From assembly GCA_963924565.1 (NCBI GenBank), contig OZ004613.1:6386001-6450000 (forward strand): DNA of 64,000 nucleotides, given 5' to 3'. Each line of letters starts with the position of its first letter. Position 1 is the first letter of the stretch. The notes under the pieces are model-generated. The model did no database searches. It was not told the origin of the DNA and worked only from the letters and a program-made list of their open reading frames with translations. This document shows positions 4,844 through 56,921 of the stretch, in pieces. The translations under genes and the position numbers were made by a program. The stretch comes from Ascidiella aspersa. Taxonomy: Eukaryota.

Positions 4844-4891
4844 TCATAGCAGAAGGCATCTCTGGCGTCTGCGCCTTCTCCGGCCTGAACG
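4844..4891 (-). CDS. NLR-A terminal exon encoding polybasic + CLLL prenylation motif
   Basis: gttttgtgttacag|CGT TCA GGC CGG AGA AGG CGC AGA CGC CAG AGA TGC CTT CTG CTA TGA. It is phase 0 like the preceding LRR exon. The paralog copy differs by a synonymous CGT>CGA. Confidence 0.8.
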   Translation of the reverse strand, partial: RSGRRRRRRQRCLLL

Positions 4892-10800: not shown

Positions 10801-13800
10801 TCAAAATGCCATTTATGCACTTAAAACTATTTCTACTAAACTTTCCAATTACATTTTAAAACTCAAACTGTGGTTTATTGAACTTGACATTCTCTTGCTT
10901 CTATGGTGTTTCATTTGAAAATTTTCTTTTTTATTTGCACGTTAACTAATCCCTCATTTAACACGAAACTCGCGTTAAACGTTTCCAGTTAGTATCATCA
11001 ACGAAATATTAAAATCTGGACAATATACCAAAAAACTTATCTACTTGCTAAAAAAATATAAAAGTGGGATGAAACGTTTAACGCTTTAGGGGAGACTGTG
11101 ACTACGGAGAGGTCGGGGGTGGCGGTCCTGCGTTGTATAACATCCCAAACTAATGTTTATTATTAAAATGAAAAACGGCAAGTAACATCGTTACATTAAT
11201 GACCATTATGACATAACCATGTCAATTGTTGTAGGTTAACTTACAGGTGTTTCTCTGCGTGTGATTGCTTCAGTAAGAACTTCGAAACCGGACAGGTCGT
11301 TCGTTTTGTTTAACCACAGGCGGTTTATCTTATGAACGCAGGTGGACAAAACTTTGAAGTCACGTGATCCAGTTGTCCTCACACGTATAAACTCTATCTA
11401 CAAAATAACACCAAGATATGTTGGTGGGTGCGCTGTCCCAGATAGATGAGGTTATCAAACTTATGCGCCGATCAGTTTGCCTCGCCCACCATTGTTGGTT
11501 ACCTTTAGTCTTCTTCTTCTTTTCGTGTGTCAAAAGAAATGCGGGTCAATATGACGTTTTATTTCAAACTGTAATTAATTTAATCGTTTCTAAACGTAAA
11601 ATGCCATATTATTTATGCGCTTAAAACAGTTTTACTAAAACTCCTAGTTACTAAGTTGTAGAGTACGCAAACTTTGCTTTTTTATTTGTACAGTAATTAT
11701 TCCCTCATTAAACACGATACTCGCGTTAAACGGTTAAGTTAGTATCATTAAATATTAGAATATGTATAATTTAGGCGAGCAATGGCGGTCTGTTTATTTT
11801 TGAAGTGGGGTAACAACGTCCTTTATACATCTTTACATCACTCCATGAAAGATTCGTGTGTACGGTCTAGCGACTTGTGTACAATCAATGCTGGGTGAAC
11901 AAACAGAAAGAAAACAGTCTATTTACGTAACAAAATGGTGCCACCATGTGGCGCTATGGTTAAAAGTATCTTTTTAGAGAAAAATGTTGTGTGGCTTTAA
12001 AAAGGCTGCTTTGTTGCCTTTAATTTTTTAATAGTGTATACAAATTTAAACGACAGGCAATCGTAAAACTTCACTAACCTTTTGTTTGGTTTTTGCCATT
12101 GTCTCCATCAACATTTCTAAACCGTTGCCGGTAAATTTGACTGGGCTGTAAAGTTCCCCGATGTCGATGACCAACTCCCTTTGTGTTGCTCGAAGCACTT
12201 GACAGAGACTGGACACTTCACTGGAAAGGATCGTTGCACCCTTTATACGAAGCTCTCCAGCGAGGAAATCGGCCACTTTTGTGGTGATTTCTTCATCGTT
12301 TGATTCCTGCGCCAAACTGCAAAGCTTAAATAAATTGGAGTTGAAGCTCTCCTCATCGTCTAATAAAAGTTGAGGTCCAAGCAAATCAATCAGACCTTTC
12401 AGCAAACGTTTTTTGCTGTCAACATCGGTGGAAGAGATTTTAAAAATTGGCTTTAGCTTACGATGGAGTTCCGTGTTTAGCAACCCGAAAAGAAACCGAA
12501 GAACCATTTCCCAAGTATTACTTTCCATGCTTTGCAGCAGACCAGAAAATGTGGACAGGTCAGTATCGAACAACAGCTTGAGTGATGCAAAAAACTCTTG
12601 CCAAAGAAGATGTAGGAAGAAGAATATTTTTTCCCCTTCCAGTATACGAAGGTTGAGGTCGCTGGAAAAAACTTGCATGTTGAGAAAGTCCTCCATTCCT
12701 TCAGCATCAAGTCCGACTTCATCAAAGTCGTCTTCGTCGAATGTGATCTTGTCATTGAGCATTCCGTGTAATGCCAGGTCAGAAAGTTTGCGCAAAATTC
12801 TGGGGTGTTCCTTAAACTTAGGCGAGTGAATGCAATCGGACACAAAAGCCGCAAACACATCTGTGAGCGTAAAAGTGCCATCTAAAGTGCCATGTTTTAG
12901 GATGTAAGGTGCGACGGTTTTGGCAAATATAGGAAGAAAGCACAAGGCCTTTGCATGTGGGTTTTGACTAAGTGACTTGGTGACCTTCTCGTAATCTTCT
13001 TTCTCTGGGCAAATTTGTCGGAAATACAAATCTTGAGAGCTTTCGTTGAAGCCGATTACCTTGACTACAAAGTGGGGCTTGCAATTAGGATGTAGCTTAA
13101 GAAAAGCTCCCGGTCGTGAAGTAAGCAGCTTGTGAGCATTAGCAAGAATATCGCCACGGAGTATGTTTTGCAGAATGACAACCGGCGTTGCGCGATCGTA
13201 CAATCCGATCACTGGAGCATCCATGTCAAGATCTTTGAACCTAGGTTCGTCCAAACCATCCAGGAAGATAAACAGCTTGTTGGATTTGGAAAGTCTTTCC
13301 AGTATTTGATCATCTATTTCCTTTGTGTGTTTCCAGTTTGGGTCGGATGACAGCAATTCCAAAACGCCTATTTTTTTATTAAGATCCAAGGTCTTCAAGT
13401 ATTTAAAAAGCCAATATCCCTTATCATCTGCAGGTAATTCATCTACAAGCTCCGTTAGTGTCTGTATAATAGCTGTAGTTTTTCCAATTCCAGCTATTCC
13501 AGTCATACCGACCACGTTGCCATGCCTCTTGACGTAATCGTCAGTTGCTGCTTTATTTCTAAATTTCTTACTTTTGGCTTCATCGATTGCTTCTTGTTTT
13601 GCAGCAGTAAATAGTTGGTTAAGTTTAAGCATGTTTGAGTTGACCTGGTTGCCTCTGAGTCGTTTCAACCCTTTTAAACCAAACTCCTCCAATGGTGCTT
13701 GCGAATCCCGAACGACGTCAAGAGGAACTGGGTTGCTTGGCAGAGTTCCGATGACCTTGTCAGCTGCTTCCTGAGACTTTTCTTGCCATGACGCTACTGA

Positions 13801-16800
13801 AAAGGTATGAACTATTCTTTAAAGATGAACGCTACCAAGGCAGGAATAAAACGAATGAAAGTTATAGATGTTATCCGCAATCTTAATGCGCCCAATTTGT
13901 TGACAATTTTGTTTTATCATGTAAGCTAACTAGCACATATGAATGTATAACTTATTTGGTAGAATATATAGCGTAAAATTTTGCCCTGCACGCTTAGCTT
14001 ATCCCAGCCACCAAAACGTTAGTAAATGATTAACGCTTATCGTCGGTTTCACTTAAAAATGACTCTTGTAAGCGTAGGCTGGCTTTGCTTATTTATATTA
14101 ATAAACGCTTTTTTTATTTCCAAAACTAGTGTGTGTTATTTTGTCAAAAAGTGATTTTGCTTTAAACAAAGTTACACCGTTTTATTTATTGTATAATCGC
14201 TAATCACTTTTGATATATCGACTTTAAAACTCTTTAACAAACAAAAGGCTTATACTGGGATCAGCAATATCGGAAATCGTTCTAGCAAACGACATTACCA
14301 TCATTATGGGACTAATTGAACGCCATCGTATTACAATTTAAATGAAACGAGGGCATACCTCTCACCCGTGACCTACTTTTTTGTCGGTAATTATAGGTAA
14401 ATGCAAAAACCCTTAAATGACACTAATCAGTTAAAAAACACTTGATTCTATACTATGTGTCTTTCCAGAAAGAGCTTAAAATGCGGTTAATTTTATATTG
14501 TTTAATATGGGCATGTTAGGCTATATATGTATATAACTTTTGTGTTTTTTTGCGGTACCGCACCCCTGTGGACGTTGGCGAGTTACAAGGGGGCGTTTTG
14601 GGTATTTTTATTATTTGGGGGGGGGGGGGGGGGGGCGTTGTACGTCACAACACAAAATAGACTTCATAACTCTGTTATTTCGGTCCGAAAAATGTGAAAG
14701 TAAGTTAAACGGAGTCTAACTATACATTCAAATCCGTTTAAGTTTTAATTAAAGTGTTTTCTTTTCAAAATTAATTACTTTAAGTATACACTAGTTCTTT
14801 AATTAGGCTTTCATGGACTCCCTAAAACTAGTTCACGGACCCCAAGGGGTCCATGGACCCCAGTTTAAGAACCCCTGACATAAAATAAGAAACAAACAGC
14901 ACTGTAGGTAACATTTAACCTTAAATGGCAACATTCGTACTGCGAACTTGTAGCAGTTTTCCGCAAAGTGGTAACTTCTGGCGTAACAATTCAATCAGGG
15001 ACGTAACCAGAAAATCAAAAAGGGGTTCTGACTTTTCAACTTAGGGAATTCCCCTATTTTTCGTCTGACTTTAATGAATAATGACGTCACAAAACGGTGA
15101 CAGTATGACGTCATAGAACTAGTCAGAAACAGCCAAATACGTCCAGCAAAAGCGACCACGTGCCCCCCTTGCCCCCCCCGTGCGGGCGCCCATGACCATA
15201 TGCTATTCCGCCTTTACGATTTACAGTTGGTAACCATGTCAGTTTTGTAATATGGTTCTGCGCATGCGCACGTCCAACTCGGGACTCGGCTAATCATACG
15301 TGGTCTTACTCGAGTCCCGACTCCGACTCAGCAGCCCTGCTGTGGCGCAACCTACACTTGGTCATTAGTTTAAATCGAAGTTATCACCAACCGTTGTCAG
15401 ATGAGGTCGCTGTTGAGTCGGCAGCCACTCCAGGTCCCGGTTGCTGGCCATATATATGAACGTCGCCATGGAGGTTTTGTATGGGACCTTGATGACCGTA
15501 AACGTCACCAATGTTTACAGGTAGGATATTGATTGGCTGGTTGTTTGCTGGTGGAAGCTGAGGTGCATTTTCACCCTGTATAAATACGTTGATGTTCAAT
15601 TTTAATTTAATTGCGAAATAACATTTTAACACAAATAGCTTTGGGTCCTTTTTAGTATTTATTTTACTTTAAACAACAAATATATTCGATTTATTTTACT
15701 TTTTAAACTGCGTTTTACCTAAAACAGCTTTAAATAAAAGACCAAATAAATGATGTGATTAAACAGAGATATAATGAGTAAAAAACAGAGATATAATGTG
15801 TTGCCTAGTGCAGTGATTTTTGACCTTTAAAAGAACTGTCCGCACTTCATTTTCGGAAAAGTTTTATCCGCACGAAACAAGCACAGTAAGTTTGCACCCT
15901 TTAGTTTCCCCTATTTGTAAAATAACAATGAAAGGATGTGTGTATTAAACCGTGAGCCTTAACCGTTATAAATATAGATAGCGTATGCTTCAATGGCTTT
16001 ACCTTAATTAACAACCACAAGAATAACAACGAAAATTTATACACAAAGGGAATTAGCAGTCATTAATGTACGTGATTAAAGACTCGTTTGCTGCTGAATA
16101 TTTTTGGAAATTTCAGCCCAATTAGGAACAACTTCTTGTTCCAAAGCTCCCCGCATTAGGTCATCAAGTGGCGCGTTGAGAAGGCAACTCCTTTTTCTGG
16201 TTTTAATGTCAACAAGTGCACTAAATCCCTTTTCTGACAAGTAAGTAGTTGGGGTTTGCAGAAGCACTTTTAGTGCTAGCGTCGCCAGCCGTCGTTGTAA
16301 TGTCCATCAAGAGCACCGATTCAAAATTGTGTTTTTCACGATTAAAAAACGCTCGTTGACAGAAATCGTTTTTAAGATAGGGCTACCATATTTCAGCACC
16401 AAAAAAGAAGACCCTTTTTGCCAGCAAGTAAAACAAAAGTAAAATTGTTACGTTTGAGTTTGATGATGTTTTACAGTTCCTTAGTATAGTTGCAGACAAA
16501 AGTTACAAAAACAAAGCAAAGTAAAAGTTACAAAAACAAAGCAAAGTAAAAGTTACAAAAACAAAGCAAAGTAAAAGTTACAAAAACAGACACAAAAATA
16601 ACAAATCCTTTTATTTTTAATTATAGCTTATTTTGCTTTATGGTTGTCTAAATTTAAAGGATGATAAGGAAAATGAAAGCATCTGCTGAGGACTACCTGT
16701 ATGCTATAGACCAGGCGTCGGCAACCTACGGCCCGCCGCCTCTTTCACAAACTAGTCATTTCAAATACTATATTTTTTTATATAATATTTTAACTAAGTA

Positions 16801-17247
16801 AGTGCGAAAAGTTTCAAGCTTCGCGCAAATTATCTTTTTACATCCGGTTTGTTTACTTAGGATGCTGTCTTTTGAACTAGATCAGCGCTTCTTTACAGTT
16901 GCGCCGTGGAAGGCTGCCAAGTGCGTCGCGGACAAACGGAAAACGCATTCATAAATATTGGATATATGTTTTTTAACATTTTTAAATTTTTTTCGGCAAT
17001 TTAAAAAAACAGCAAGGAATTTAAAAGAAATGCAGGTATACCAAAAAGAAATAGCGCTCGCTTGGTTAACAAACACTGAAATAGATTAACTATTAAAGGT
17101 TAATAAGATAAGTTTCACTTTGTCAAATATCAGTGCTAAACGGATTTAGGAGGAGGATGACATGGAATTAAAAACCCAAAGCAGCAAAGATTTTGATTAA
17201 TTTATACGAGAAGAACTTACTTGGTTTTGGTTTGGAGTATCGGCCAT
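4844..17247 (-). CDS. NLR-A: spliced NACHT-LRR protein (~915 aa) with an N-terminal low-complexity/amyloid-like motif and a C-terminal polybasic-CaaX
   Basis: Exons (minus strand, all AG..GT, phases consistent): 17221-17247 (MADTPNQNQ), 15392-15575, 12079-13796 (NACHT), LRR exons 11245-11397, 9932-10087, 8175-8336, 6352-6513, 5332-5469, and terminal 4844-4891 (RSGRRRRRRQRCLLL*). Confidence 0.85.
8804..8965 (-). pseudogene. Dead LRR exon (pseudoexon) within NLR-A
   Basis: A 162-nt LRR exon homolog, IKLLQLYNNMLDSRGLSCLATSVHDINHL*LTYCEIAGSDLKPLTDAISQMNRP. It has an in-frame TAA (8876-8878) and the donor is changed from GTAAGT to GCAAAT. Confidence 0.85.
10693..10752 (-). pseudogene. Truncated duplicate of the 3' part of the first LRR exon (60 nt, frame-preserving)
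   Basis: aag|TSDLPDFEVLTEAIARREIP|GTAAGT, homologous to the end of exon 11245-11397. The acceptor is weak. Confidence 0.6.
12079..13796 (-). CDS. NACHT NTPase exon of NLR-A (NBD-HD1-WHD-HD2)
   Basis: Walker A GIAGIGKTT, Walker B LFIFLDGLDE, sensor-1 LLTSRP, LCFLP, winged-helix FFFLHLLWQEFFAS and HD2 WEMVLRFLFGL. Acceptor ttttcag at 13797, donor AAG|GTTAGT at 12078. Confidence 0.95.
15197..15338 (-). repeat. Inverted-repeat arm 1 (CAGGGCTG..GAGTCGG family transposon end) with TGCGCATGCGCA
   Basis: Reverse complement of 19003-19146. Related ends occur at ~34625 and ~4955. Confidence 0.75.
15392..15575 (-). CDS. NLR-A exon 2, N-terminal putative amyloid/RHIM-like signalling region
   Basis: tatacag|GENAPQLPPANNQPINILPVNIGDVYGHQGPIQNLHGDVHIYGQQPGPGVAADSTATSSDN-G|GTTGGT. 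The phase-1 end matches the phase of the NACHT exon, and homologous exons exist in B and A'. Confidence 0.85.
16076..16380 (-). pseudogene. hAT (Charlie/Buster-type) transposase C-terminal dimerisation-domain remnant in intron 1 of NLR-A
   Basis: LALKVLLQTPTTYLSEKGFSALVDIKTRKRSCL...LDDLMRGALE...PNW...QQQTSL matches the TTYLCExGFS..IKTKxRNRL...QxSH pattern of Charlie/Buster transposases. A degenerate CAGTG terminus lies at ~15810, and a frameshifted copy at ~55905-56200. Confidence 0.8.
16498..16588 (+). repeat. 25-bp A-rich tandem repeat (aaagttacaaaaacaaagcaaagta x~3.5)
   Basis: Read directly. It is absent from the A' copy (junction near 56270). Confidence 0.85.
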
Positions 17248-18295
17248 GTTATTCCTTGTGCTTGATTGGTTGATACAGTTTTTTCTACTAAATATAACTT
17301 GCCTGTAAAATGGAACCAGATACCAAGTTAAATGACCGTTTGGACATATACTGTGATATCTGTGATCTAGCCCTGTTGAAGTAGCACTGTCCAACGATTG
17401 GCATACACACAATATTATACCAGGTACAGAGGTACGCAGGCACAGTGGAAGCAAGTCGTTGGACGATCATTATAGCAGCGTTACCTGCTGGGTCTTGTTC
17501 GTACATACAATTTTTATGTTTGGAAAATAGTGATCGTCAACCTTTAGCACACGGACCACTGTTACGCCAACAGCTTTCAGGCTACAATCGAAGTTTTATA
17601 CAAATGAACGAAAGTGCATTGCGGCAAGATGACCCACTATCTTAAATCTGCGGCAAGCGTTGAAAGTAATTGTTTTTAATTTGGCTTTATCAAATATAAG
17701 TAAACTTGATTGAAAATGGTTTCTTTTGAAACCAGGTAGCTCGAAGTGACATTAAAAACACCACAGACTGGAGAGCGGCAGGAAAAGGTTGAGATCCATC
17801 GATTTAAGGTTTTGATATTATAAACTAACCTGACATTCCAGTTCAATGTTCATATACCTACACAACCTTACACATTTTCATCAGTACAGCAGGAAGGCGC
17901 TTGCACCAAACTACAGGCAACAACCAAACGCCAAGCTCTTTGTTGAAGGCAGACTTCGAAGTATTTCTTTTTTCTAAAGGAAATGACGTTAAGGCTCCAT
18001 TCATTTAGTTTGGCCCCTAACGCTTTTACTCATTTCCTGGCTGGCAATGACGCGAGCTAAAAAAAAAATTCTTAGTTTCAAGATTCGGTTGCATAGAAAT
18101 GCGTATTCTTATTGTTGTATAGTTGTTTAGTTGCTTCACTGGCACAATGATAATAATTCCATTAGACTTTTTTTATTACTTGTATTTGGTATGTCCGATA
18201 CTTGAAATTACATTCCGATACCCGATAGATTGGACAAAAAGCATCCGATCCGACAGCGAATGACGTCATTACTATAATCAAACAAGCATATAGAT

Positions 18296-19146: not shown

Positions 19147-22100
19147 TGGTATATTTTCCAACCATGCATTGTGAGTGAATGAGTTATTTCGGCTGCGTTT
19201 TGTGCCTTATATGAAGCCGCAAGACCTGGTAAAAAAGGAACCGGCTGATTAGGAAGCGGCTATTTAAGCTGGCCGATTTATGTTGAGCACAACGAATTGA
19301 AGACGCCGAAGCAAACGCAATCATATTGGTGCAGAATGAGCCGTAAAAAATTAACCAAGAAAAGTAAAATCAATGTAAACTACCGCAGTGGTCGAGCCAA
19401 CAAAATCAAAAGGCGACCCATCGTTGAAAAACACTGATTTAAACTTGTAGAGAAACGACGCATGTCTGTTTGTGCTTGTAATTATAGCGTGTTCGCCTGG
19501 TAAAGTGTTAAATAATTCACCTCGATACTCTTTTCCTTTCCTGGCCGTTCTGGCAAATCCATCCGGCATTTCGATTTAGCTAATCCCCAACGCAGTGTCT
19601 CTTGTGCTGTATATAGTGTCACGCTTCTGCTGGATAAAAAACTCCAGTCATAAAATGCATGCCTTACTTCCGAGACGCGTTTTACTGCGCTGTAAGCTAT
19701 TTTATTAAGAGCGAGCTATGTTGAAATATTTGAATGTATAATAAATTTATAAGCGACCTGACAGTAAGCATTTGAAATGCAATGACAGTTTGTTTAGTTT
19801 CGATATAGTGGAGTTCAGATAGTACGGTGGTCATGTCTCACCTGTTGAAATATACAAACTAAAAAAATGCGTTTATTTGCTTGAACTTGGCAAGTTTATC
19901 ACCCTTGTTTGATGCAAGCTTTGTTGACTATTTTGCGTCAGAGCGCACCTGTACACCTTGTGCATGGCAGCATGAAACGCCTGCAGCTGACCCTGCCTGC
20001 CTTGTAGTCAAGTTTAATTTACTTAGCGGAGTTTAGCTCGTAATAAAATTATTCATTGAATGATTTACTGAAATGCTTCTAGCATTTTTGTTGTTGTTGT
20101 ATCGTTATGTTTTCCATAGTCCCTGGGCTGATTTCGCAATCAAAATAACAGCAATGATCATAGCTTTTTGCCTTTCGACTTTATTTGACATTAGAAAATT
20201 CATTTTCATGTTTATCACAAAAAACGTGCGTATGCTGACTCATTCTCCTAATAATATTTTGTCTGTGCTGACACACGTATGCCTAGACCTAAAGTGTCAG
20301 TTCTCATATCAAGTCGAAAGTTTACTTGACTGCTAAAGCAAACTACCACACTTCTATAGGCTACAATGTACTTTTTGTAAAAAACAATCAAAATTCTTTG
20401 TTATTATGTAATTTAATGCACTGTTGTTATAATCTGGGTCAAAGAACCTGGTAAATAGACATAAATGAAGTCTTTCACCTCTCCGTTAATGTAAAATAAT
20501 TGATAAAGAACGTTTTAGAAACTAAAATAAGACAAACTAAGCACACAACTCTCAAATAAGCACGTTTCTTAGAAATAAGCACATTTATGTTTTCTAAGAC
20601 ACTGCACCCAAAAATAAGCACAAATCTTAGAAATAAGCACGGTGTGGTAACCCTGGATATAATATTGATTTCGTTTTACTTTTATCATAACTATTATGGT
20701 AAACGGCAATCAAAAATAAAAAACAAAAACATTTTGCCAGATTTATCCAAATTACAGCCAACTGTAATTTTCAATTTGGCTTGCCAGATGTTGAAATGAT
20801 TTTGTTTTTGAAGTTTGTCCCCACAAAATCTCACCTTATTGTAGTCTGGATTGTTGTTTCGCAATCGCGGCTTGCAACGCAATCGGACACTTTATATGGC
20901 TGCTTCCAAATTGGCCGGCTCCATTATTTCGGCCGTGATGTGTACCTTATATGAAGCGGCAAGACTTGATGAAAAAGGAGCCGACTGCTTTGGATGCGGC
21001 TATTTAAACTGGCCGATTTATGTTTAGCACAACGAATTAAAGGCACCAAGGCAAACGCAATCAGTTTGGTGCAGAATGAGCCGTAAGCAATCACACGAGA
21101 AAAGCATTTGATCATCAGTTGAGCTAGTTGTGTTGCGTTATGGTTGACCTTCGTGTTAAAGTTTGCTGCTGATTAATGCTGCAAGTCTACTTTAATAAGG
21201 TATATAATTTAAGTCTTTGTTAATTATATTTATTTTAAGTGAATGCATTCTTATTTCTTGAATGCCTAGAAAACACACCACGGTCTAAAATACCGCCTCA
21301 TACAGGGGACTGAACCACCCGCCCAAAGAAACAAAATATGTGGCCAGCGAGAATAGTTTAAACCCACCACACAAATACTCCGACGAGTATGATTTACCAC
21401 TTTTGAAACGTCTATTTGTCGAGGGTTTTAACTACCAATGTTGTCGTTCTATGGTTCTAATGTTGTTCTTATATATAGCAAAATAATGTTGTAGTAATAT
21501 AGGTTTTTATGCACAAGTGTTGTCGTTCTATGGCTCTAATGTTGTACTAATAAGTTTTATCTACAAATGTTGTCGTTGTATGGCCTGGCAACTCCTGGGC
21601 AGTTGTTTAACGTACATAGAGCAGGTGTGTTTTATGCTAATGCAAATTGAGGATTTCTGTTTGAGTTTTCGCAGTTATTTGTGGCAAGAATGACATTGTA
21701 GATATAGTGTGCTTTTCAAGTTTTTTTTGTTATTTTACATTTAACCTGCATAATTAGTTCACAATGTTACCAGTAGCAAGGGTAAAGAGGCGTGAGTTTA
21801 AAGTGGACTCTAGTTAAAAGGGTGGATGACAAAGACGGGCAACATAAAATTATGTAGCTTCACTTCGGCCTAACACCCTTCGCGATTTCAAAACGAGAAC
21901 CTTATTTAAAGCTACGAGCATACTCAGGTTAGTCTTATCAATAAATCGACCACGATTTATTTAAAAATATTTAACACATTTAATGTTTGTGAATCGTAAT
22001 AATAATGAAAAGAACGACAATAAAACAAATAATATTTAGCCAAAACGAAAATGAAAAAGTGTGACAACACAACATTTTGTTTTACGTTAATAGACAGTCG

Positions 22101-22560
22101 AAAACAACTAGTAAAAATTCGTGATTTTTACGCAAATACAGTAGAACGTTTGGCCAAAAGTTGGCGACATGTTAAACAATTATCAAGAGCACAGTGTTTA
22201 AAGCAGGACTAATATAAATAACCTCTAGGATTGCTAAAGAGGTGAGCACATCGCGTAATAAAAATGTTATAACAACCAAAACATTAAACGAATATAACGT
22301 TGATTAAATGTGTGGAGTATTGTAGCTGTATTTGGTTTCATCGTTTAAGTTAACTAGTTTTGTTACAATATAAAAGTATTTGTTGCAAACCGGTTTATTC
22401 AGTTATTGTCTAAAGAGACTTATGACATCATTTGGATCATTTTTGAAAACAAAACCGGTTCTATAGAAAAGACAATGTTGTTAATAGCTCTCTTGTATAA
22501 AACAAAATATTGCAAAAAATTATTGGATGAGCAGGTCAATTGCAGTTAATTTGAATTGAG

Positions 22561-25500
22561 TTATAGTTTGTTCAAATTTGCCAAATCCGCAACAGACCTC
22601 CGAACCTCCTTTGTTGTCCCCTGAGGTGATCTTTGCGTTGACCTTTGTGGTGACCTCTGCGCTGAACTCTCTGTTAATTCCTGTTAAAGCAAAGAAACGC
22701 ACTTGTTTAAAAAATGTTATTGTAAGAATTTGAATGAAGTTTTCACTCTGTCTTTACCAAAACAGATCCCACGTTAATTTTGATATTATTTGCCGATACT
22801 ACTAGGATTTATTGTGTTCACACAACATATAGTATGTAATAAGAAGCATGTGTTGCTACTTTTACGTTGAAATGTTCTTACATGATCTGTCCCATCGTCC
22901 AATTCTTGTTCAGTGTATGTTTCTTGGCTTTGACTTGCTTCTGGTTCCAGTTTTGATTTCGCTTTATCGGAGGCTTCCTTTTCTTGACATAACTGTGAAA
23001 GCAGATTTGTTAAGACGTGAATTTGTTCTTTAACGGGACGTACACGTGGAAACTGTAAAACACAATCTGTGTTCTGTTAAAGTACTTAATCAAACTACTT
23101 AAGAGTTACTCTTGGCGACAAAAATGCAGGACTGCGCAAAAATGTTGTGATTACCTCGATACATTAACTACTCGTATTGTTTGTTTGGTCGGTTGTCTAT
23201 AAAAGCAAAACTTGCTAGAGCGGATATACGCGTATCTGTGTAACAACATTAGGCGTCACTCAGACTAAAAGATAAGTTATTACATTTAAAGTTAGAACAT
23301 GCGTCTATTTAAAACGCAGTAGCCACTATTTAAAAATGCAATAACGCCCGGGTCAAGCCAGGTTGTTTCGTTCTGAACCCGAAGCTTTGTGTTTAGCTTT
23401 TCCTGTTTTAAGTTCTGCTTCTAAGTTCAGTTGGGCCTGGACAGATCCAAGCAAACTTGATCTCAGCGAGAAACAAGCGAATGCATTCGATCGCCAGACC
23501 TCCAAGCGCCTTACTTCACAACTTATTCCACTGAACGTCAATAACTACCATCATTATTCCGCAAATATCGACAGGTTTTTTTAACTAATGTTCGGAACGC
23601 ATCATGACGTCACACGTCTAAACACTGACGTCACTAGTGTCGCATCGTTGTCCCGACAACATATCCTTATGTTATGAGTGCCTACCTTGAGCAGAGAATC
23701 TACATCATTATAATCGATGTCGCAATTATCCAATTCCAGCTCTTGTACATTGTGGGCACAAGTTTGGAGGAAAGCATGTCCTTGCGATCCCAACTCGTTG
23801 TAGCGAAGGTCCAACTTCATCATCTACATAAGCACAACATAATGTAAGATACAAGCAGGTGTTTGGCTGCATACAGGAAGCAGCAAATTGAACAATCCAT
23901 ATTCGCAACTTACACCAAAAAACTGCTATTCGTAATAGGTCAGGAAAAAATGGCCATATCGCCCCCCCCCTAGATCCGCCCCTGCCTGCCGTGAGATTTC
24001 CAACTAATGACCTCGGCCATACCGGGACAGTCACTCTAGCAACTGAGCTATGCAAGATCTAAATACAAACAAAAAGGATGTCCAGTTAATGATGGTTCAT
24101 TGAGAAGAAGTACTATCACAATAAATGCACCCAGGCCAGGGCCATTTAAAGGCCAGTAATCAGGGCCAGAGGGGTCAGTAATCAGGGGTGGTTTATGGGA
24201 GAGGGCACGTGGACATGGCTCCACTTAAAATGTATTTATCCTATTGAAACAAAGCGAATGCAAAAATATTTCGCAATACCCGCGAATCCAAGTTATGTTT
24301 CATTATGTCTTAGCTCACTTTAAAACCGGTTTATCCATGGGCGCCGTGCGTTTTATCGCACCCTCTAAAAATAAAGTTTTGGAAACTTAAACTTTACAAA
24401 GGCATGATTTTACGCTGCACGCAAGTGCTTTTTCGTCTTCATAATGTAAAAAGTAGTCACGTTTTGACGTAACGCTATGTCCATTACTTGTGACGTCACG
24501 ATTTGACGTAGCATTGTGACATCATACCTGCAATTTTTTCATGCGTCCGCAAAAAAAACAAAAAAAAACGCCCCTGCCAGTAATTACTTAGTAATGGTGA
24601 CACAAAAAATTCCGTAACGGAAAAATCTTTTGTACACCAGACAGGTGGTTCAGTTACCAAATTTAACACACTATGCTGTTTTATGTTTATCCAACTCAAT
24701 GTCATTCCAATGTTCAACACATCCTTTATTCCAACAACACACACTTACAGGTCGATCCATTCGTGAAATGGCGTCAGTTAGAGGTTGCAGATCGGAATCA
24801 GCGATTTCGCAATTCCATAATTGCAGCTGGTTGATGTTATGCACACTTGTTGCCAGGCAACTCAAACCACGTAAATCCAGATTGCTCTGATACAGTTCCA
24901 ACAATTCCATCTACAATGACAAGAAGATCCAATTGTTACGCATTCTTATTTGTCTTCTAACAAACGTTTGCATAGAAAAATCGAGATATTGGTGTAAATA
25001 AGCCTAATTGTGAACACTGAGCGCGCAAAATAGTTTGTATCCAACTATAACAATCAGTTTTTTGAACGTTTGTGGTTTACAGATTGCTTCCAAGTAAATG
25101 TCCCATGTGCTTGTCCCAGGTCTCCAAACCCTTGAAGCGTATCTTTTTATTATATGTGTTACGCGACATGCTACACGCGACACGCCTATTCTATCGTGCT
25201 AGTGCCGAGCGGTCATTCGCTCGATCATTCGAAAATACAAGCTGACGTGTGCACTGCTCTGGCTCCTACACCCTCTTTGGCTGACGTTTTTGAGTGTTTG
25301 TTTGCAGACCTTTTTAAACATCTATCAATATGCAAAAGGCTGTTAGCACAGTTGGAATTATTAACGAGACAAAACCAGAGAGGGTAATTTTGTGAAAACA
25401 AGTGCCGACTTTATTTTTAAAGATGGTTTTAAGTGAAACACAACCTCCAGCCATGCAACTTTTCATAAAAGTATGTAATTGGCAAGTTGTTTGGAAGCGT

Positions 25501-31500: not shown

Positions 31501-33125
31501 TACCGACCACGTTACCATGTCTCTCGACATAATCGTCATTGGCTGTATTATTTGTAAATTTCTTACTTTTGGCTTTAATGATTGCTTCTTGTTTAGCAGC
31601 AGTAAATAGTTGGTTGAGTTTAAGCGTGGTTGAGTTGACCTGGTTGTCTCTGAGTCGTTTCAATCCTTTTAAACCAAACTCCTCCAAAGGTTCTTGCGAA
31701 TCCCGAACGACGTCAAGAGGAACTGGGTTGCTTGGCAGAGTCCCGATGACCTTGTCAGCTGCTTCCTGTGACTTTTCTTTCCATGATGCTTCTGAATAAT
31801 AATAATAATAAACCTATTATTTTCATATCCACATTTTTTATCGTAAGGATGACCTTAATCTGTATTTTATTTAGTGTGGGCTGTCTCGGCAATAAGCGGC
31901 TTACAAAGGCGTGGGTTAAAGCCATATGTGACGTTAAAAAGGTCCTCTCCGACCTTAAGCGAAACGTTAACTTTATAGCGCATCAAATTACCAAACTTTA
32001 AACCTTAGCAAACAGCAGAACCCCAACGAGAGGCGGAAGGCGTGCCATTTTGGTTTGCACTAACGGTTACCTTCATCTGTTTTTAGGTTAACAGTCCAAC
32101 ATTTAAATGGCTATGGCGATATGATAAAATGTCTGAGGATTCTATTATAAGCTGTGTATAAAAATACCAAACCCAAATTTAACTTGTTATTTTGTAACTT
32201 TAGTTTAAAATGCAATTTGGGGACGCTTTGATTCTAGGTACTGATTTGTGCTATATAAACATATCCTACCAAAATGCTGCTTAATACAAATTAACCAGTA
32301 ACAGTTTGCTCTTGTGGATAAAACAAGAACGATTTACTTAACCGTGAAATACAATCAGCTATTGGAAACGCATGTAGCATTCTATATAGTATGTATTATC
32401 TTTCATTTTGATTGACTAAATGTTAGTGCTACAATTGTGTGGTTATGGTTAATGCTTATTAAAGTGACGTTCAAGAATTCCGCATTTCTTTATGTCTATG
32501 TCTCACTGTTATGAGTAAAAGTTATCACTAACCACTGTTAAAGGGCGCTGCTATGTCATGAGCCACTCCAGGCCATGGTTGATAGAAGTTGCCTTGAACG
32601 ATAAGTTGATGTATTGGACCACGACTCTGTATGTCACCAATGTTTAGAAGCTCGGTATTGATGGACTGGCTGTTTTCAGGTGGATTCTGAGCTGCATTTT
32701 GATCCTGTGGCGAAATCGTTGATGCTGTTAAACTTAAGTGTATTTGTGATACCACATCCTAACATGTATTTTCTACTACAAAAGAAACAAATCTAATAAC
32801 AACATTTCAAGATAACTGTTTCGGTATATTGTGACTATAAAGTTAACTTTCTTTCCCGCTCAGACATAGTTCTCCACATTTAACTGAAATATGTATTTCT
32901 TACCAATTGTACATTTTACAATGTTTTATCTAAAGATAAATAGAGCGGCAAAGCAAAGCACTCTATATTATAACCTAGTAAAAATCAGTCGGACTTTCGT
33001 TAACGTTGCTGCAAATACTAGAAAATTTAGTCGAAAGTCGAACACATACTTTTAGTTTAAACTAAATCCTCGATCCACCAATTACGAAAAAAACTTACTT
33101 GATTTTGGTTGCCAGTCTCGGCCAT
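22561..33125 (-). CDS. NLR-B: spliced NACHT-LRR protein (~917 aa) with an N-terminal amyloid-like motif and a disordered S/T/Q-rich C-tail
   Basis: Exons: 33099-33125 (MAETGNQNQ), 32533-32704, 30077-31791 (NACHT), LRR exons 27023-27175, 25670-25825, 24749-24910, 23686-23823, tail exon 22882-22992 (LCQEKEASDK...DDGTDH|GTAAGA) and terminal 22561-22680 (ELTESSAQRSPQRSTQRSPQG...ANLNKL*). All splice phases are consistent. Confidence 0.82.
27222..27340 (-). mobile_element. 5'-truncated non-LTR retroposon fragment with a (GAATCT)n tail
   Basis: Flanked by a duplicated GCTGYCCCAGAT and absent at the homologous site in NLR-A (~11432-11450). It has a microsatellite tail and a small hairpin, GACC-GAAT-GGTC. 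Confidence 0.7.
28338..29943. mobile_element. Non-autonomous hAT element in an NLR-B intron, with a nested element at 28723-29461
   Basis: TIR CAGGGGTCGGCAACC / GGTTGCCGACTTCTG with a degenerate TSD (TTTAAGAG/CTTTAGAG). The empty site is seen in NLR-A at ~11970. The nested element runs CAGACCTGGGCAA...TTGCCCACCCCTG with TSD ACTTACAC/ATTTACAC. Confidence 0.85.
30077..31791 (-). CDS. NACHT NTPase exon of NLR-B
   Basis: Same motifs as A (GIAGIGKTT, LFIFLDGLDE, LLTSRP, FFFIHFLWQEFF). Acceptor ttattcag at 31792, donor ACG|GTTTGT. Confidence 0.95.
32533..32704 (-). CDS. NLR-B exon 2, N-terminal putative amyloid/RHIM-like region
   Basis: ccacag|DQNAAQNPPENSQSINTELLNIGDIQSRGPIHQLIVQGNFYQPWPGVAHDIAAPFNS-G|GTTAGT, homologous to A exon 2. 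Confidence 0.82.
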
Positions 33126-50800: not shown

Positions 50801-53800
50801 TTTCCAATTACATTTTAAAATTCAAACTGTGGTTTATTGAACTTGACATTCTCTTGCTTCTATGGTGTTTCATTTAAAAATTTTCTTTTTTATTTGCACG
50901 TTAACTAATCCCTCATTTAACACGAAACTCGCGTTAAACGTTTCCAGTTAGTATCATCAACGAAATATTAAAATCTGGACAATATACCAAAAAACTTATC
51001 TACTTGCTAAAAAAATATAAAAGTGGGATGAAACGTTTAACGCTTTAGGGGAGACTGTGACTACGGAGAGGTCGGGGGTGGCGGTCCTGCGTTGTATAAC
51101 ATCCCAAACTAATGTTTATTATTAAAATGAAAAACGGCAAGTAACATCGTTACATTAATGACCATTATGACATAACCATGTCAATTGTTGTAGGTTAACT
51201 TACAGGTGTTTCCCTGCGTGTGATTGCTTCAGTAAGAACTTCGAAACCGGACAGGTCGTTCGTTTTGTTTAACCACAGGCGGTTTATCTTATGAACGCAG
51301 GTGGACAAAACTTTGAAGTCACGTGATCCAGTTGTCCTCACACGTATAAACTCTATCTACAAAATAACACCAAGATATGTTGGTGGGTGCGCTGTCCCAG
51401 ATAAATGAGGTTATCAAACTTATGCGCCGATCAGTTTGCCTCGCCCACCATTGTTGGTTACCTTTAGTCTTCTTCTTCTTTTCGTGTGTCAAAAGAAATG
51501 CGGGTCAATATGACGTTTTATTTCAAACTGTAATTAATTTAATCGTTTCTAAACGTAAAATGCCATATTATTTATGCGCTTAAAACAGTTTTACTAAAAC
51601 TCCTAGTTACTAAGTTGTAGAGTACGCAAACTTTGCTTTTTTATTTGTACAGTAATTATTCCCTCATTAAACACGATACTCGCGTTAAACGGTTAAGTTA
51701 GTATCATTAAATATTAGAATATGTATAATTTAGGCGAGCAATGGCGGTCTGTTTATTTTTGAAGTGGGGTAACAACGTCCTTTATACATCTTTACATCAC
51801 TCCATGAAAGATTCGTGTGTACGGTCTAGCGACTTGTGAACAATCAATGCTGGGTGAACAAACAGAAAGAAAACAGTCTATTTACGTAACAAAATGGTGC
51901 CACCATGTGGCGCTATGGTTAAAAGTACCTTTTCAGAGAAAAATGTTGTGTGGCTTTAAAAAGGCTGCTTTGTTGCCTTTAATTTTTAATAGTGTATACA
52001 AATTTAAACGACAGGCAATCGTAAAACTTCACTAACCTTTTGTTTGGTTTTTGCCATTGTCTCCATCAACATTTCTAAACCGTTGCCGGTAAATTTGACT
52101 GGGCTGTAAAGTTCCCCGATGTCGATGACCAACTCCCTTTGTGTTGCTCGAAGCACGTGACAGAGACTGGACACTTCACTGGAAAGGATCGTTGCACCCT
52201 TTATACGAAGCTCTCCAGGGAGGGAATCGGCCACTTTCGCGGTGATTTCTTCATCGTTTGATTCCTGCGCCAAACTGCAAAGCTTAAATAAATTGGAGTT
52301 GAAGCTCTCCTCATCGTCTAATAAAAGTTGAGGTCCAAGCAAATCAATCAGACCTTTCAGCAAACGTTTTTTGCTGTCAACATCGGTGGAAGAGATTTTA
52401 AAAATTGGCTTTAGCTTACGATGGAGTCCCGTGTTTAGCAACCCGAAAAGAAACCGAAGAACCATTTCCCAAGTATTACTTTCCATGCTTTGAAGCAGCC
52501 CAGAAAATGTGGACAGGTCAGTATCGAACAACAGCTTGAGTGATGCAAAAAACTCTTGCCAAAGAAGATGTAGGAAGAAGAATACTTTTTCCCCTTCCAG
52601 TATACGAAGGTTGAGGTCGCTGGAAAAAACTTGCATGTTGAGAAAGTCCTCCATTCCTTCAGCATCAAGTCCGACTTCATCAAAGTCGTCTTCGTCGAAT
52701 GTGATCTTGTCATTGAGCATTCCGTGTAATGCCAGGTCAGAAAGTTTGCGCAAAATTCTGGGGTGTTCCTTAAACTTAGGCGAGTGAATGCAATCGGACA
52801 CAAAAGCCGCAAACACATCTGTGAGCGTAAAAGTGCCATCTAAAGTGCCATGTTTTAGGATGTAAGGTGCGACGGTTTTGGCAAATATAGGAAGAAAGCA
52901 CAAGGCCTTTGCATGTGGGTTTTGACCAAGTGACTTGGTGACCTTCTCGTAATCTTCTTTCTCTGGGCAAATTTGTCGGAAATACAAATCTTGAGAGCTT
53001 TCGTTGAAGCCGATTACCTTGACTACAAAGTGGGGCTTGCAATTAGGATGTAGCTTAAGATAAGCTCCCGGTCGTGAAGTAAGCAGCTTGTGAGCATTAG
53101 CAAGAATATCGCCACGGAGTATGTTTTGCAGAATGACAACCGGCGTTGCGCGATCGTACAATCCGATCACTGGAGCATCCATGTCAAGATCTTTGAACCT
53201 AGGTTCGTCCAAACCATCCATGAAGATAAACAGCTTGTTGGATTTGGAAAGTCTTTCCAGTATTTGATCATCTATTTCCTTTGTGTGTTTCCAGTTTGGG
53301 TCGGATGACAGCAATTCCAAAACGCCCATTTTTTTATTAAGATCCAAGGTCTTCAAGTATTTAAAAAGCCAATATCCCTTATCATCTGCAGGTAATTCAT
53401 CTACAAGCTCCGTTAGTGTCTGTATAATAGCTGTAGTTTTTCCAATTCCAGCTATTCCAGTCATACCGACCACGTTGCCATGCCTCTTGACGTAATCGTC
53501 AGTTGCTGCTTCATTTCTAAATTTCTTACTTTTGGCTTCATCGATTGCTTCTTGTTTTGCAGCAGTAAATAGTTGGTTGAGTTTAAGCATGGTTGAGTTG
53601 ACCTGGTTGCCTCTGAGTCGTTTCAACCCTTTTAAACCAAACTCCTCCAATGGTGCTTGCGAATCCCGAACGACGTCAAGAGGAACTGGGTTGCTTGGTA
53701 GAGTTCCGATGACCTTATCAGCTGCTTCCTGAGACTTTTCTTGCCATGATGCTGCTGAAAAGGTATAAACTACTCTTTAAATATGAACTCAACCAAGGCA

Positions 53801-56800
53801 GGAATAAAACGAATGAAATTAGATGTTGTCCGCAATCTTAATGCACCCAATTTGTTGCCAATTTTGTTTTATCATGTGAGCTAACTAGCACATATGAATG
53901 TATAACTTCCTTGGTAGAATATATAGCGTAAAATTTTGCCCTGCACGCTTTGCTTATCCCAGCCACCAAAACGTTAGTAAATGATTAACGCCTATCGTCG
54001 GTTTCACTTAAAAATGACTCTTGTAAGCGTAGGCTGGCTTTGCTTATTTATATTAATAAACGCTTTTTTTATTTCCAAAACTAGTGTGTGTTATTTTGTC
54101 AAAAAGTGATTTTGCTTTAAACAGAGTTACACCGTTTTATTTATTGTATAATCGCTAATCACTTTTGATATATCTCCAACTTAAACTCTTACAAACAAAA
54201 GGCTGATACTGGGATCAGCAATATCGGAAATCGTTCTAACAAACGACATTACCATCATTATGGGATTAATGTAACGCCGTCGTGTATACACATAAGGGGG
54301 CATTACATAAAAGTAATTTTTGCAAAATTTTGTACGTCACAACACAAAATAGACTTCATAACTCTGTTATTTCGGTCCGAAAAATGTGAAAGTAAGTTAA
54401 ATGGAGTCTAGCTATACATTTAAATCCGTTTAAGTTTTAATTAAAGTGTTTTCTTTTCAAAATTAATTACTTTAAGTATACACTAGTTCTTTAATTAGGC
54501 TTTCATGGACTCCCTAAAACTAGTTCACGGACCCCAAGGGGTCCATGGACCCCAGTTTAAGAACCCCTGACATAAAATAAGAAACAAACAGCACTGTAGG
54601 TAACATTTAACCTTAAATGGCAACATTCGTACTGCGAACTTGTAGCAGTTTTCCGCAAAGTGGTAACTTCTGGCTTAACAATTCAATCAGGGACGTAACC
54701 AGAAAATCAAAAAGGGGGTTCTGACTTTTCAACTTAGGGAATTCCCCTATTTTTCGTCTGACTTTAATGAATAATGACGTCACAAAACGGTGACAGTATG
54801 ACGTCATAGAACTAGTCAGAAACAGCCAAATACGTCCAGCAAAAGCGACCACGTGCCCCCCTTGCCCCCCCGTGCGTGCGCCCATGACCATATGCTATTC
54901 CGCTTTTACGATTTACAGTTGGTAACCATGTCAGTTTTGTAATATGGTTCTGCGCATGCGCACGTCCAACTCGGGACTCGGCTAATCATACGTGGTCTTA
55001 CTCGAGTCCCGACTCCGACTCAGCAGCCCTGCTGTAGCGCAACCCACACTTGGGCATTAGTTTTAAATCGAAGTTATCACCAACCGTTGTCAGATGAGGT
55101 CGCTGTTGAGTCGGCAGCCACTCCAGGTCCTTGTAGCTGGCCATATATATGAACGTCGCCATGGAGGTTTTGTATGGGACCTTGATGACCGTAAACGTCA
55201 CCAATGTTTACAGGTAGCATATTGATTGGCTGGTTGTTTGCTGGTGGAAGCTGAGGTGCATTTTCACCCTGTATAAATACGTTGATGTTCAATTTTAATT
55301 TAATTGCGAAATAACATTTTAACACAAATAGCTTTGGGTCCTTTTTAGTATTTATTTTACTTTTAACAAAAAATATATTCGATTTATTTTACTTTTTAAA
55401 CTGCGTTTTACCTAAAACAGCTTTAAATAAAAAACCAAATAAATAATGTGATTAAACAGAGATATAATGTGTAAAATTAACAGCCAATTTAATATGGTTT
55501 TAAGAGCAGAAAATATTTTTTTTTATTGTTTATTTTAAATTTTTGATGGCAAAACTACAAAGATTATGTCCAAGGTAACCGTGCTATACAGGCTCATCAG
55601 TATCGCATGCCAGAAAAGCGAATGACTGTTGCCTAGTGCAGTGATTTTTAACCTTTAAAAAAACTGTCCGCACTTCATTTTCGGAAAAGTTTTATCCGCA
55701 CGAAACAAGCACAGTAAGTTTGCACCCTTTAGCTTCCCCTATTTGTAAAATAACAATGAAAGGATGTGTGTTTTAAAACCGTGAGTCTTAATCGATATAA
55801 ATATAGATAGCGTATGCTTCAATGGCTTTACCTTAATTAACAACCACAAGAATAACAACAACCATTTATACACAAAGGGAATTAGCAGTCATTAATGTAC
55901 GTGATTAATGACTCGTTTGCTGCTGAATATTTTTGGAAGTTTCAGCCCAATTAGGAACAACTTCTTGTTCCAAAGCTCCGCGCATTAGGTCATCAAGTGT
56001 CGCGTTGAGAAGACAACTTCTTTTTCTGGTTTTAATGTTAACAAATGCACTAAATCCCTTTTCTGCCAAGTAAGTAGTTGGTTTGCAGAAGCACTTTTAG
56101 TGCTAGCGTCGCCAGTTCGTTGTAATATCCATCAAGAGCACCGATTCAAAATTGTGTTTTTCACGATTAAAAAACGCTCGTTGACAGAAACCGTTTTTAA
56201 GATAGGGCTACCATATTTTCAGCACCAAAAAAAGACCTTTTTTGCCAGCACGTGAAACGAAAGTAAAATTGGTAAATCCTTTTATTTTTAATTATAGCTT
56301 ATTTTGCTTTATGGTTGTCTAAATTTAAAGGATGATAAGGAAAATGAAAGCATCTGCTGAGGACTACCTGTATGCTATAGACCAGGCGTCGGCAACCTAC
56401 GGCCCGCCGCCTCTTTGACAAACTAGTCCATTTCAAATACTATATTTTTTTTATATAATATTTTAACTAAGTAAGTGCGAAAATTTTCAAGCTTCGCGAA
56501 AATGATCTTTTTACATCCGGTTTGTTTACTTAGGATGCTGTCTTTTGAACTAGATCAGCGCTTCTTTACAGTTGCGCCGTGTAAGGCTGCCAAGTGCGTC
56601 GCGGACAAACGGAAAACGTATTCATAATATTGGATATATGTTTTTTAACATTTTTAATTTTTTTTCGGTAATGTAATAACAACTTGCAAGGAATTTAAAA
56701 GAAATGTAGGTATACCAAAAAGAAATAGCGCTCGCTTGGTTAACAAACACTGAAATAGATTAACTATTAAAGGTTAATAAGATAAGTTTCACTTTGTCAA

Positions 56801-56921
56801 ATACCAGTGTTAGACGGATTTATGAGGAGGGTGACATGGAATTAAAAACCCAAAGCAGCAAAGATTTTGATTAATTTATACGACAAAAACTTACTTGGTT
56901 TTGGTTTGGAGTATCGACCAT
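44832..56921 (-). CDS. NLR-A': near-identical paralog of NLR-A (amyloid-like motif, NACHT, LRR, polybasic-CLLL)
   Basis: Exons 56895-56921 (MVDTPNQNQ), 55085-55268, 52037-53754, 51204-51356, 49918-50073, 48160-48321, 46340-46501, 45320-45457 and 44832-44879. It carries the same pseudoexon (48790-48951) and truncated exon (50679-50738). Confidence 0.85.
48790..48951 (-). pseudogene. Dead LRR exon in NLR-A'
   Basis: Same in-frame TAA and GCAAAT donor as 8804-8965. Confidence 0.85.
52037..53754 (-). CDS. NACHT NTPase exon of NLR-A'
   Basis: 548-aa ORF nearly identical to 12046-13692 (about a dozen amino-acid differences). Walker B is LFIFMDGLDE. Confidence 0.95.

Follow-up and report, generated by a model that had tools for sequence, protein, structure and literature searches.

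Gene structure of NLR-A and its N-terminal motif exon

The analyzed stretch of DNA (64,000 nt; positions 6,386,001 to 6,450,000 of contig OZ004613.1; hereafter the window) carries three genes of the NACHT-LRR (NLR; LRR, leucine-rich repeat) type, and one of them, NLR-A, is the main subject of this study. The protein predicted for NLR-A opens with a short tail containing a glycine-periodic motif, which is encoded by a separate exon (the motif exon). This exon recurs in 62 copies in the searched genome (308.6 Mb, 75 contigs), nearly all of them in the NLR array of contig C7, at 2.4-6.65 Mb. The gene order of NLR-A is as follows: (i) a start exon, (ii) the motif exon, (iii) a NACHT exon, (iv) RI-type LRR exons, and (v) an exon encoding a polybasic stretch and CLLL. 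All searches were run exon by exon, and the frame across exons was checked by arithmetic only.

The motif exon (15392..15575, minus strand; 184 nt) is the second coding exon of NLR-A and encodes residues 10-70 of the protein. It was delimited by its splice sites, by the 62 genome copies and by a peak of RNA depth. The acceptor AG (15577-15576) follows a pyrimidine-rich tract, the donor is G|GTTGGT after 15392, and the exon is entered in phase 0 and left in phase 1. The junction with the NACHT exon is in frame (G + TA = Val, followed by ASWQEK... and the P-loop GIAGIGKTT), and the acceptor, donor, phases and open frame are preserved in every examined copy. The peptide named in a preliminary description of this DNA is thus encoded exactly at 15392-15575, by an internal coding exon whose recurrence is far beyond chance.

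Because the motif exon has no in-frame ATG and opens at an acceptor, an upstream coding exon is required. Comparison of the upstream regions of NLR-A and NLR-B by tblastx revealed one short collinear block standing out, which corresponds to the start-codon exon of NLR-A (17221..17302, minus strand; ATG at 17247; acceptor AG at 17304-17303). The exon contributes nine codons, MADTPNQNQ (17247..17221), and ends in phase 0 with a perfect donor, CAA|GTAAGT, after 17221; it reads ...ttttacag|GC...AATAAC ATG GCC GAT ACT CCA AAC CAA AAC CAA|GTAAGT. It also occurs upstream of three copies elsewhere in the genome, namely those for which the fetched flanks were long enough. The N-terminal tail is therefore composed of 70 residues, 9 from the start exon and 61 from the motif exon. 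With this start exon in place and the phases fitting, the proposed location of the motif at the extreme N-terminus, ahead of the NTPase, is borne out. No other element precedes the NACHT module.

The NACHT exon (12079..13796, minus strand; acceptor ttttcag|TA, donor AAG|GTTAGT) encodes a pre-NACHT segment, the P-loop GIAGIGKTT, NACHT, a winged helix and HD2. Pfam models matched NACHT (3.8e-13) and NOD2_WH (1.4e-10), and the match to NLRC4_HD2 (3.2e-06; 28.1 bits) lies under the Pfam cut-off of 33.1. About 110 residues separate the motif from the P-loop in the predicted protein. The RI-type LRR exons follow at 11382-5314 on the same strand (read by eye, with no Pfam run). With an NTPase containing a P-loop, a winged helix and HD2, followed by LRRs, NLR-A has the composition of an animal NACHT-LRR protein.

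Two further open reading frames (ORFs) were noted within the gene, both on the minus strand. The first (4844-5008) ends with RRRRRRQRCLLL-stop, which combines a polybasic stretch with a CaaX signal; should this ORF be the final exon, the NLR-A protein would receive a geranylgeranyl group and be anchored to a membrane. The second (16076-16267), located in the intron between the start and motif exons, reads ...FSALVDIKTRKRSCLLNAPLDDLMRGALEQ... and is probably a transposon fragment, which we take to resemble the C-terminal dimerization region of a hAT-type transposase.

Conservation, expression and paralogues of the motif exon

Most copies of the motif exon are 88-98% identical. No stop codon is present in 61 of the 62, and their indels are in frame. 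Each of the 59 family NACHT exons (defined as those at 78% identity or more) is paired, by coordinates, with a motif exon located 0.8-3.8 kb upstream on the same strand. Conversely, 59 of the 62 motif exons are paired with a family NACHT exon, which leaves three exceptions. One of them (L034) precedes a NACHT exon that is only 50% identical. Another (L050; C6:31280000-31289999, at 328-465), reading …NANFGEVYDHQGSIQNVYGDVNIH…, is followed 6 kb downstream by a NACHT ORF of a different class (24% identical; P-loop GGPGSGKTT), with an oppositely oriented gypsy-like pol fragment in between; this motif exon is either an orphan or has been shuffled onto another NLR family. The last one (L035) is a truncated orphan copy. 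An orphan motif exon is placed at C7:6456963.

Conservation was assessed among 16 diverse variants, and sequence patterns and substitution rates among 43 unique variants. In exon numbering, used for all motif residues below, the conserved core spans I15-G43 (protein residues 24-52; 15447..15533, minus strand), as delimited by conservation, patterns and the ratio of nonsynonymous to synonymous substitution rates (dN/dS). Residues N21, G30, I32 and G37 are invariant among the 16 variants, and I15, G23 and D24 are nearly so. The conserved glycines (G23, G30 and G37) are exactly seven residues apart, and each is followed at position +2 by a hydrophobic residue (phi). The motif can thus be described as a phi-N-phi-G-D-phi head with three G-x-phi heptads, in which phi-N-phi stands before a heptad block of 21 residues (15447-15509, minus strand, in NLR-A). 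The heptads of NLR-A are GDVYGHQ / GPIQNLH / GDVHIYG, and the cleanest form was found in L034 (GDIHGHH / GDIDHHY / GDIYYVR). Two pseudo-repeats had been proposed for this peptide; its repetitive character holds, and it is better read as three heptads with glycines spaced by seven. The pattern N-phi-G-[DE]-phi is present in 38 of the 43 unique variants and the three-heptad pattern, with a spacing of 7-9 allowed, in 41. The strict RHIM tetrad and the pattern G-phi-Q-phi-G are each present in none (0/43), and phi-Q-phi-G, in the form M-Q-I-G, in two.

Pairwise Nei-Gojobori analysis of the 43 unique variants gave a dN/dS of 0.68 for the motif exon overall, 0.53 for the motif core, 0.80 for the N-terminal flank and 0.94 for the C-terminal flank. 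Judged from these ratios, the constraint is real, moderate and focused on the motif, with flanks near neutral; together with the four invariant residues, this agrees with the expectation that the motif would be conserved relative to its flanking linker. The low-complexity nature of the flanks was also confirmed. The tail contains no Lys or Arg, consists of 24% Asn+Gln, 13% Pro and 11% Gly, and carries a net charge of about -6. AlphaFold2 modeling of the motif exon with the family alignment gave a confidence score (pLDDT) of 50 and no secondary structure; the tail is thus predicted to be disordered as a monomer, a result that does not discriminate between the readings considered below.

RNA depths were taken from run X3, of which about 6% was read. 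On the expected strand, the depth was 2.8 in the bin of the motif exon, compared with about 0.1-0.5 in neighbouring intron bins, and 1.25 in the bin of the start exon (17200-17399). A variant read in this run, 15527 T>C, corresponds to the I17V form of the paralogues, and the reads therefore derive from several family members. The depth of this part of the run was too low for junctions, and no reads spanning one were recovered. This absence is compatible with an untranslated motif exon, either placed in the 5' untranslated region, in which case the first Met of the NACHT exon would initiate translation, or skipped. Such an arrangement is very improbable, given the open frame and in-frame indels of 61 of the 62 copies, the phase-compatible, conserved ATG exon with its consensus donor upstream, the core dN/dS below 1, and the confinement of RNA depth to the exon. 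The motif exon is real, shows low-level expression and is almost certainly translated.

Farther upstream of NLR-A, collinear conservation with NLR-B points tentatively to a candidate non-coding first exon and promoter (20835..20935, minus strand), comprising the TATA-like CATATAAGG, a short exon-like stretch and the donor AAG|GTGAGA at 20835; no RNA support for it was found in run X3. Two blocks in this region (19184-19443 and 20653-21202, minus strand) are related to each other, and both are conserved and collinear with the upstream region of NLR-B. The distal one (20653-21202) holds CATATAAGG and the donor, and the proximal one (19184-19443) is a partial duplicate devoid of the donor.

Both other NLR genes of the window, located on the minus strand as well, have a motif exon and a start exon. 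In NLR-B, the motif exon (32533..32704) is of a divergent B-type (NIGDIQ..GPIHQ..QGNF) and the start exon (33125..33099) encodes MAETGNQNQ. The third gene, a near-duplicate of NLR-A located approximately 40 kb away, contains a motif exon (55085..55268), a start exon (56921..56895; MVDTPNQNQ) and a NACHT-exon ORF (53650..52004). Comparison of NLR-A and NLR-B revealed a mosaic: their NACHT exons (12079-13796 and 29954-31790) differ by a synonymous divergence (dS) of 0.20 and share 87% amino acid identity, whereas their motif exons (15392-15575 and 32533-32704) show a dS of 0.72 and 46% identity. The N-terminal classes are therefore older than the NACHT exons behind them. This pattern suggests either gene conversion, i.e., homogenization, of the NACHT exons or swapping of 5' exons; by either route, as far as these divergences tell, distinct tag classes (at least two, A and B) are retained.

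A sister NLR subfamily, whose NACHT exons are 59-63% identical to those of the family, is located mostly on C7 at 0.3-1.7 Mb. In the four copies inspected (L064-L067; C7 at 0.72, 1.19 and 1.59 Mb, and C6 at 30.97 Mb) no motif exon was found within 8-9 kb upstream. Another short, conserved, exon-like block lies about 2.1 kb upstream of the NACHT exon (L064:6696-6770), and it is open in two frames, reading ...GAGTSKNQNEISDQSGGVAFQAR... and MKSPINLEEWLSRLE.

Between the NLR genes of the window there is a 24-nt tandem repeat (62124-62709) open on both strands. Its minus strand reads G-V-N-A-K-V-T-S about 22 times, ending with ...SEVCCGFGK, with alternating hydrophobic and polar residues. A degenerate counterpart is present at 22520-22702, and the repeat is probably a minisatellite.

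The origin of the genome was approached through mitochondrial COX1 (L068; C75:21817-26154). In this gene, Gly is the residue most frequently aligned with AGA/AGG codons (13 of 29 aligned positions), and every TGA codon is aligned with Trp. This is the ascidian mitochondrial code, and the genome is therefore probably that of a tunicate. The mitochondrial contig C75 (at least 26 kb) exceeds the usual ascidian length, possibly because it is a concatemer.

Searches for related motifs and signaling partners

Assignment of the peptide to the RHIM family, suggested by its V-N-I-G core, could not be upheld. Pfam searches with the 16 diverse variants (E<=10) gave no match to RHIM, HET-s, PP (Ses_B), sigma, TPR or Flg_new, and whole-genome scans with the RHIM (PF12721), Ses_B/PP (PF17046) and HET-s_218-289 (PF11558) models touched no motif exon. 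The caution that the motif is not a canonical RHIM was accordingly well placed, since the tetrad is missing from all 43 unique variants. The only Pfam RHIM matches in the genome belong to a dispersed repeat with short open frames, reading SGVQLGKNNFLS. Copies of this repeat at eight places (L056-L063; C1, C2, C4, C6 and C7) read CMEFSGVQLGKNNFLSYFKF in very short open frames; they were rejected as RHIM proteins and are regarded as chance matches in a dispersed repeat. Weak, sub-threshold matches to the first 31 positions of the HET-s_218-289 model (about 15 bits, E 5-7) were obtained in open frames of 53-64 residues at C4:29503457-29554698 (five places within 51 kb) and at C8:17066452, and may represent the short N-terminal exon of another family.

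A profile search of 1.84 billion representative proteins with the 16 variants yielded only 8 matches. Seven of these were scanned with Pfam and found to be five TPR proteins, one protein with Flg_new repeats and one unrelated protein; the eighth is a simple repeat of the ALGDVYQ type. All eight were rejected as relatives, their scores being sums of weak repeat matches. A profile search of the PDB returned only a designed TPR protein, the exon peptide yielded no candidate when 5.8 billion proteins were searched by word index, and in the ESM Atlas nothing exceeded noise. The word-indexed search with the NACHT exon identified as best outside matches contigs at 31-36% identity, followed by vertebrate NLRP3/12 at 27-30%. 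For the nearest outside NACHT exons (about 33% identical), no motif exon was found upstream in two metagenome-assembly contigs (L052 and L055).

No matching effector gene had been noticed in the window, and this result now extends to the whole genome, as searched by profile and by DNA patterns. A profile of the 31-residue core returned exactly the 62 NLR-linked exons and no non-NLR gene. The three-heptad DNA pattern identified the motif exons and 21-nt minisatellites, and the pattern combining the head with the second heptad gave 9 matches outside the cluster as compared with 13 when it was reversed as a control; these searches would miss a motif that has diverged strongly or is divided among micro-exons. 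A 21-nt tandem repeat, GGAGATGTCGCCCATAGCAAC, located on the plus strand at C4:33181723-33181772 and C4:33225785-33225855, reads as G-D-V-A-H-S-N heptads resembling those of the NLRs, and is either a coding repeat or a minisatellite.

A scan for Death domains (CARD, DED and PYD were not scanned separately) gave 15 matches in the genome, none of them in the NLR array of C7, and the region of NLR-A preceding the NACHT exon consists of the 70-residue tail only. The claim that the motif replaces a death domain finds no counterpart in the cluster, since no paralogue there has such a domain and no Death-domain exon is present on this part of C7. Replacement is an analogy to the NLRs of other animals, not an event seen at this locus. 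Taken as a whole, the preliminary description was right about the place and the kind of the element and wrong about its RHIM membership.

Possible function and comparison with known systems

The reading we favor, with a probability of roughly one in three, is that the motif serves as a proximity-triggered homotypic assembly tag, possibly amyloid-like. Ligand-activated NACHT modules would oligomerize and thereby concentrate several tails, and the concentrated tails would fold together into a stacked, amyloid-like beta structure, as in NWD2/HET-S or RHIM. Such a stack could propagate the signal to tails of the same class or to a further partner, and the motif would then work like the RHIM, PP or HET-s families without belonging to them. 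This reading is favored because of the N-terminal position on a NACHT protein, the length of 21 residues, the disorder, the Gly/Asn turn positions, a phi-N-phi-G core close to that of the RHIM, and the fact that distinct classes are maintained. On every one of the approximately 59 family genes, the tail sits where the NLRs of other animals carry a death-fold domain, and the motif is kept even in front of the NACHT exon of L034. The phi-N-phi-G core is one residue away from the phi-Q-phi-G of RHIM, PP and BASS3, and two paralogues do read M-Q-I-G. The flanks are disordered and N/Q/G-rich, and the A and B classes remain distinct on otherwise homogenized receptors. The likeness in position to amyloid-signaling NLRs drawn in the preliminary description is also sound, as residues 24-52 lie N-terminally, directly before the NTPase and in a disordered context (pLDDT 50).

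Several observations weigh against this reading. None of the sequence models for known amyloid motifs matches the exon; the Gln of the RHIM core is absent from 41 of the 43 unique variants and the strict tetrad from all of them. Throughout the genome, as covered by the profile and DNA-pattern searches, no non-NLR gene carries the motif, matches outside the array being at control level, and the receptor/effector pairing that defines amyloid signaling is therefore missing. In the core, two Asp residues and a Gly-Pro are conserved, and the tail as a whole bears a net charge of about -6 and no basic residue, which is unfavorable for an in-register parallel stack. In addition, the purifying selection is only moderate, and the motif was not found outside this genome in the searches of 1.84 billion and 5.8 billion proteins or in the L052 and L055 contigs.

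A serious rival, to which we give only a slightly lower probability, is that the motif is an ordinary short linear docking motif. In that case the disordered tail would form a one-to-one complex with a folded adaptor or enzyme domain, with no self-templating, and NACHT oligomerization would simply raise avidity. A disordered context with few invariant positions is typical of linear motifs; the failure to find a same-motif partner in the genome is what would be expected of a folded partner, and Asp, Pro and His, as conserved residues, are more in keeping with recognition than with stacking. However, about 29 conserved residues with a strict seven-residue spacing of glycines are long and periodic for a linear motif, and no candidate binding domain was found.

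A less likely but still serious alternative is that the tail is flexible and weakly constrained, a spacer or an auto-inhibitory lid devoid of a specific signaling role, and that its conservation stems mostly from recent tandem duplication. The array is young (most copies being 88-98% identical), the overall dN/dS is 0.68 with flanks near 0.8-0.9, AlphaFold2 sees no structure, and the tail has no relatives outside the genome. Duplication would not readily account for the same six positions (N21, G23, D24, G30, I32 and G37) being kept in variants only 38-50% identical, and also before a NACHT exon only 50% identical. Moreover, the indels are all in frame, 61 of 62 copies are free of stops, and the exon was never lost in the 59 family genes.

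We consider it highly doubtful that the tail is a metal- or pH-responsive switch, in which the His/Asp arrangements H-G-D-x-H and G-D-x-x-G-H would bind Zn/Ni or sense protonation and so control assembly. The A-type and L034-type motifs carry 3-5 His residues beside the conserved Asp, on one face of a putative strand. The B-type, however, keeps the Gly/Ile/Asn skeleton with one His only and has Asn in place of the second Asp, so that His is not conserved across the family. The idea that the exon is a remnant of a folded repeat, either one helix-turn of a TPR or the beta-hairpin that terminates a Listeria-Bacteroides (Flg_new) repeat, draws on the only profile matches (TPR proteins with N-L-G-N/D-V/I-Y-x-x-Q-G-D and one Flg_new protein with G-D-V-Y..G..I-Q-N..G-D...Y). 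It is close to refuted: the E-values of these matches add up numerous weak stretches, each worth about 6 bits, the exon is missed by the TPR and Flg_new models of Pfam, Gly and Pro interrupt any helix, AlphaFold2 predicts none, and a lone half-repeat cannot fold.

The assembly tag may be extended to a more specific proposal, which we regard as improbable: a tunicate-specific, non-RHIM, amyloid- or prion-like motif of three Gly-x-hydrophobic heptads, through which dozens of NLR paralogues belonging to one class would cross-seed from receptor to receptor without a dedicated effector. At least two mutually insulated classes (A and B) would be kept by selection while gene conversion homogenizes the NACHT exons, and amyloid signaling would have evolved independently in an animal lineage devoid of canonical RHIMs.

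To our knowledge, RHIM is the only established amyloid-type signaling motif in animals. The NLR-A motif is a concrete and cheaply testable candidate for a second, independently evolved amyloid-like signaling module in this group. Should the peptide fail to assemble, the family would still illustrate cleanly how an animal NLR can signal via a short linear N-terminal tag. The array is also an example of mosaic evolution, with old N-terminal classes on recently homogenized NACHT exons in a 4-Mb tandem array.

The closest animal parallel is the RHIM, with its core tetrad (V/I)-Q-(V/I/L/C)-G (PMC9444067). A RHIM-NACHT-repeat architecture, which offers a precedent for the assembly tag, has been described in amphioxus, e.g., BF82280, and RHIMs appear to be absent from tunicates (Kajava et al., 2014; PMC4262963); the genome scan, in which the RHIM model found a dispersed repeat only, fits the latter remark (PMC4262963). 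Like the amphioxus RHIM-NACHT proteins, NLR-A carries a short non-globular N-terminal motif in the usual place of a death fold, with disordered flanks, and like the RHIM it has a hydrophobic-polar-hydrophobic-Gly core. Unlike in the RHIM, this core is V-N-I-G, and the heptad glycines, the conserved Asp and the Gly-Pro have no RHIM counterpart; no RHIM-type partner, either kinase or adaptor, was found in this genome.

In fungi, the HET-s-type pseudo-repeat is composed of 21 residues, and the NLR side carries one copy (10.1101/2020.01.06.895854). The family described here resembles the fungal NWD2/HET-S, PP and sigma systems in having one short motif copy N-terminal to NACHT and a constrained block of 21 residues, as well as Gly/Asn at conserved turn positions, a disordered monomer and several sequence classes per genome. 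It differs from HET-s/PP in that no HET-s_218-289 or Ses_B match and no motif-bearing effector, adjacent or elsewhere, was found, and from the fungal systems in general in its animal host and net acidic motif. What defines the bacterial BASS motifs is that neighbouring genes encode a receptor and an effector sharing the motif, the effectors being of the Bell-domain type (Dyrka et al., 2020; 10.1101/2020.01.06.895854). As in these systems, the folded effector domain of the NLR gives way to a short N-terminal motif, and in BASS many motif families of this kind exist; in contrast to them, no receptor/effector pair was found here, and the G-phi-Q-phi-G signature of BASS3 is absent (0/43). Fungi, bacteria and amphioxus thus already provide examples of NLRs in which a short motif stands at the N-terminus where a folded domain would otherwise be. 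The present case adds several novel aspects: heptad-spaced glycines without a Gln core, a probable tunicate host, a scale of approximately 59 genes and a class structure.

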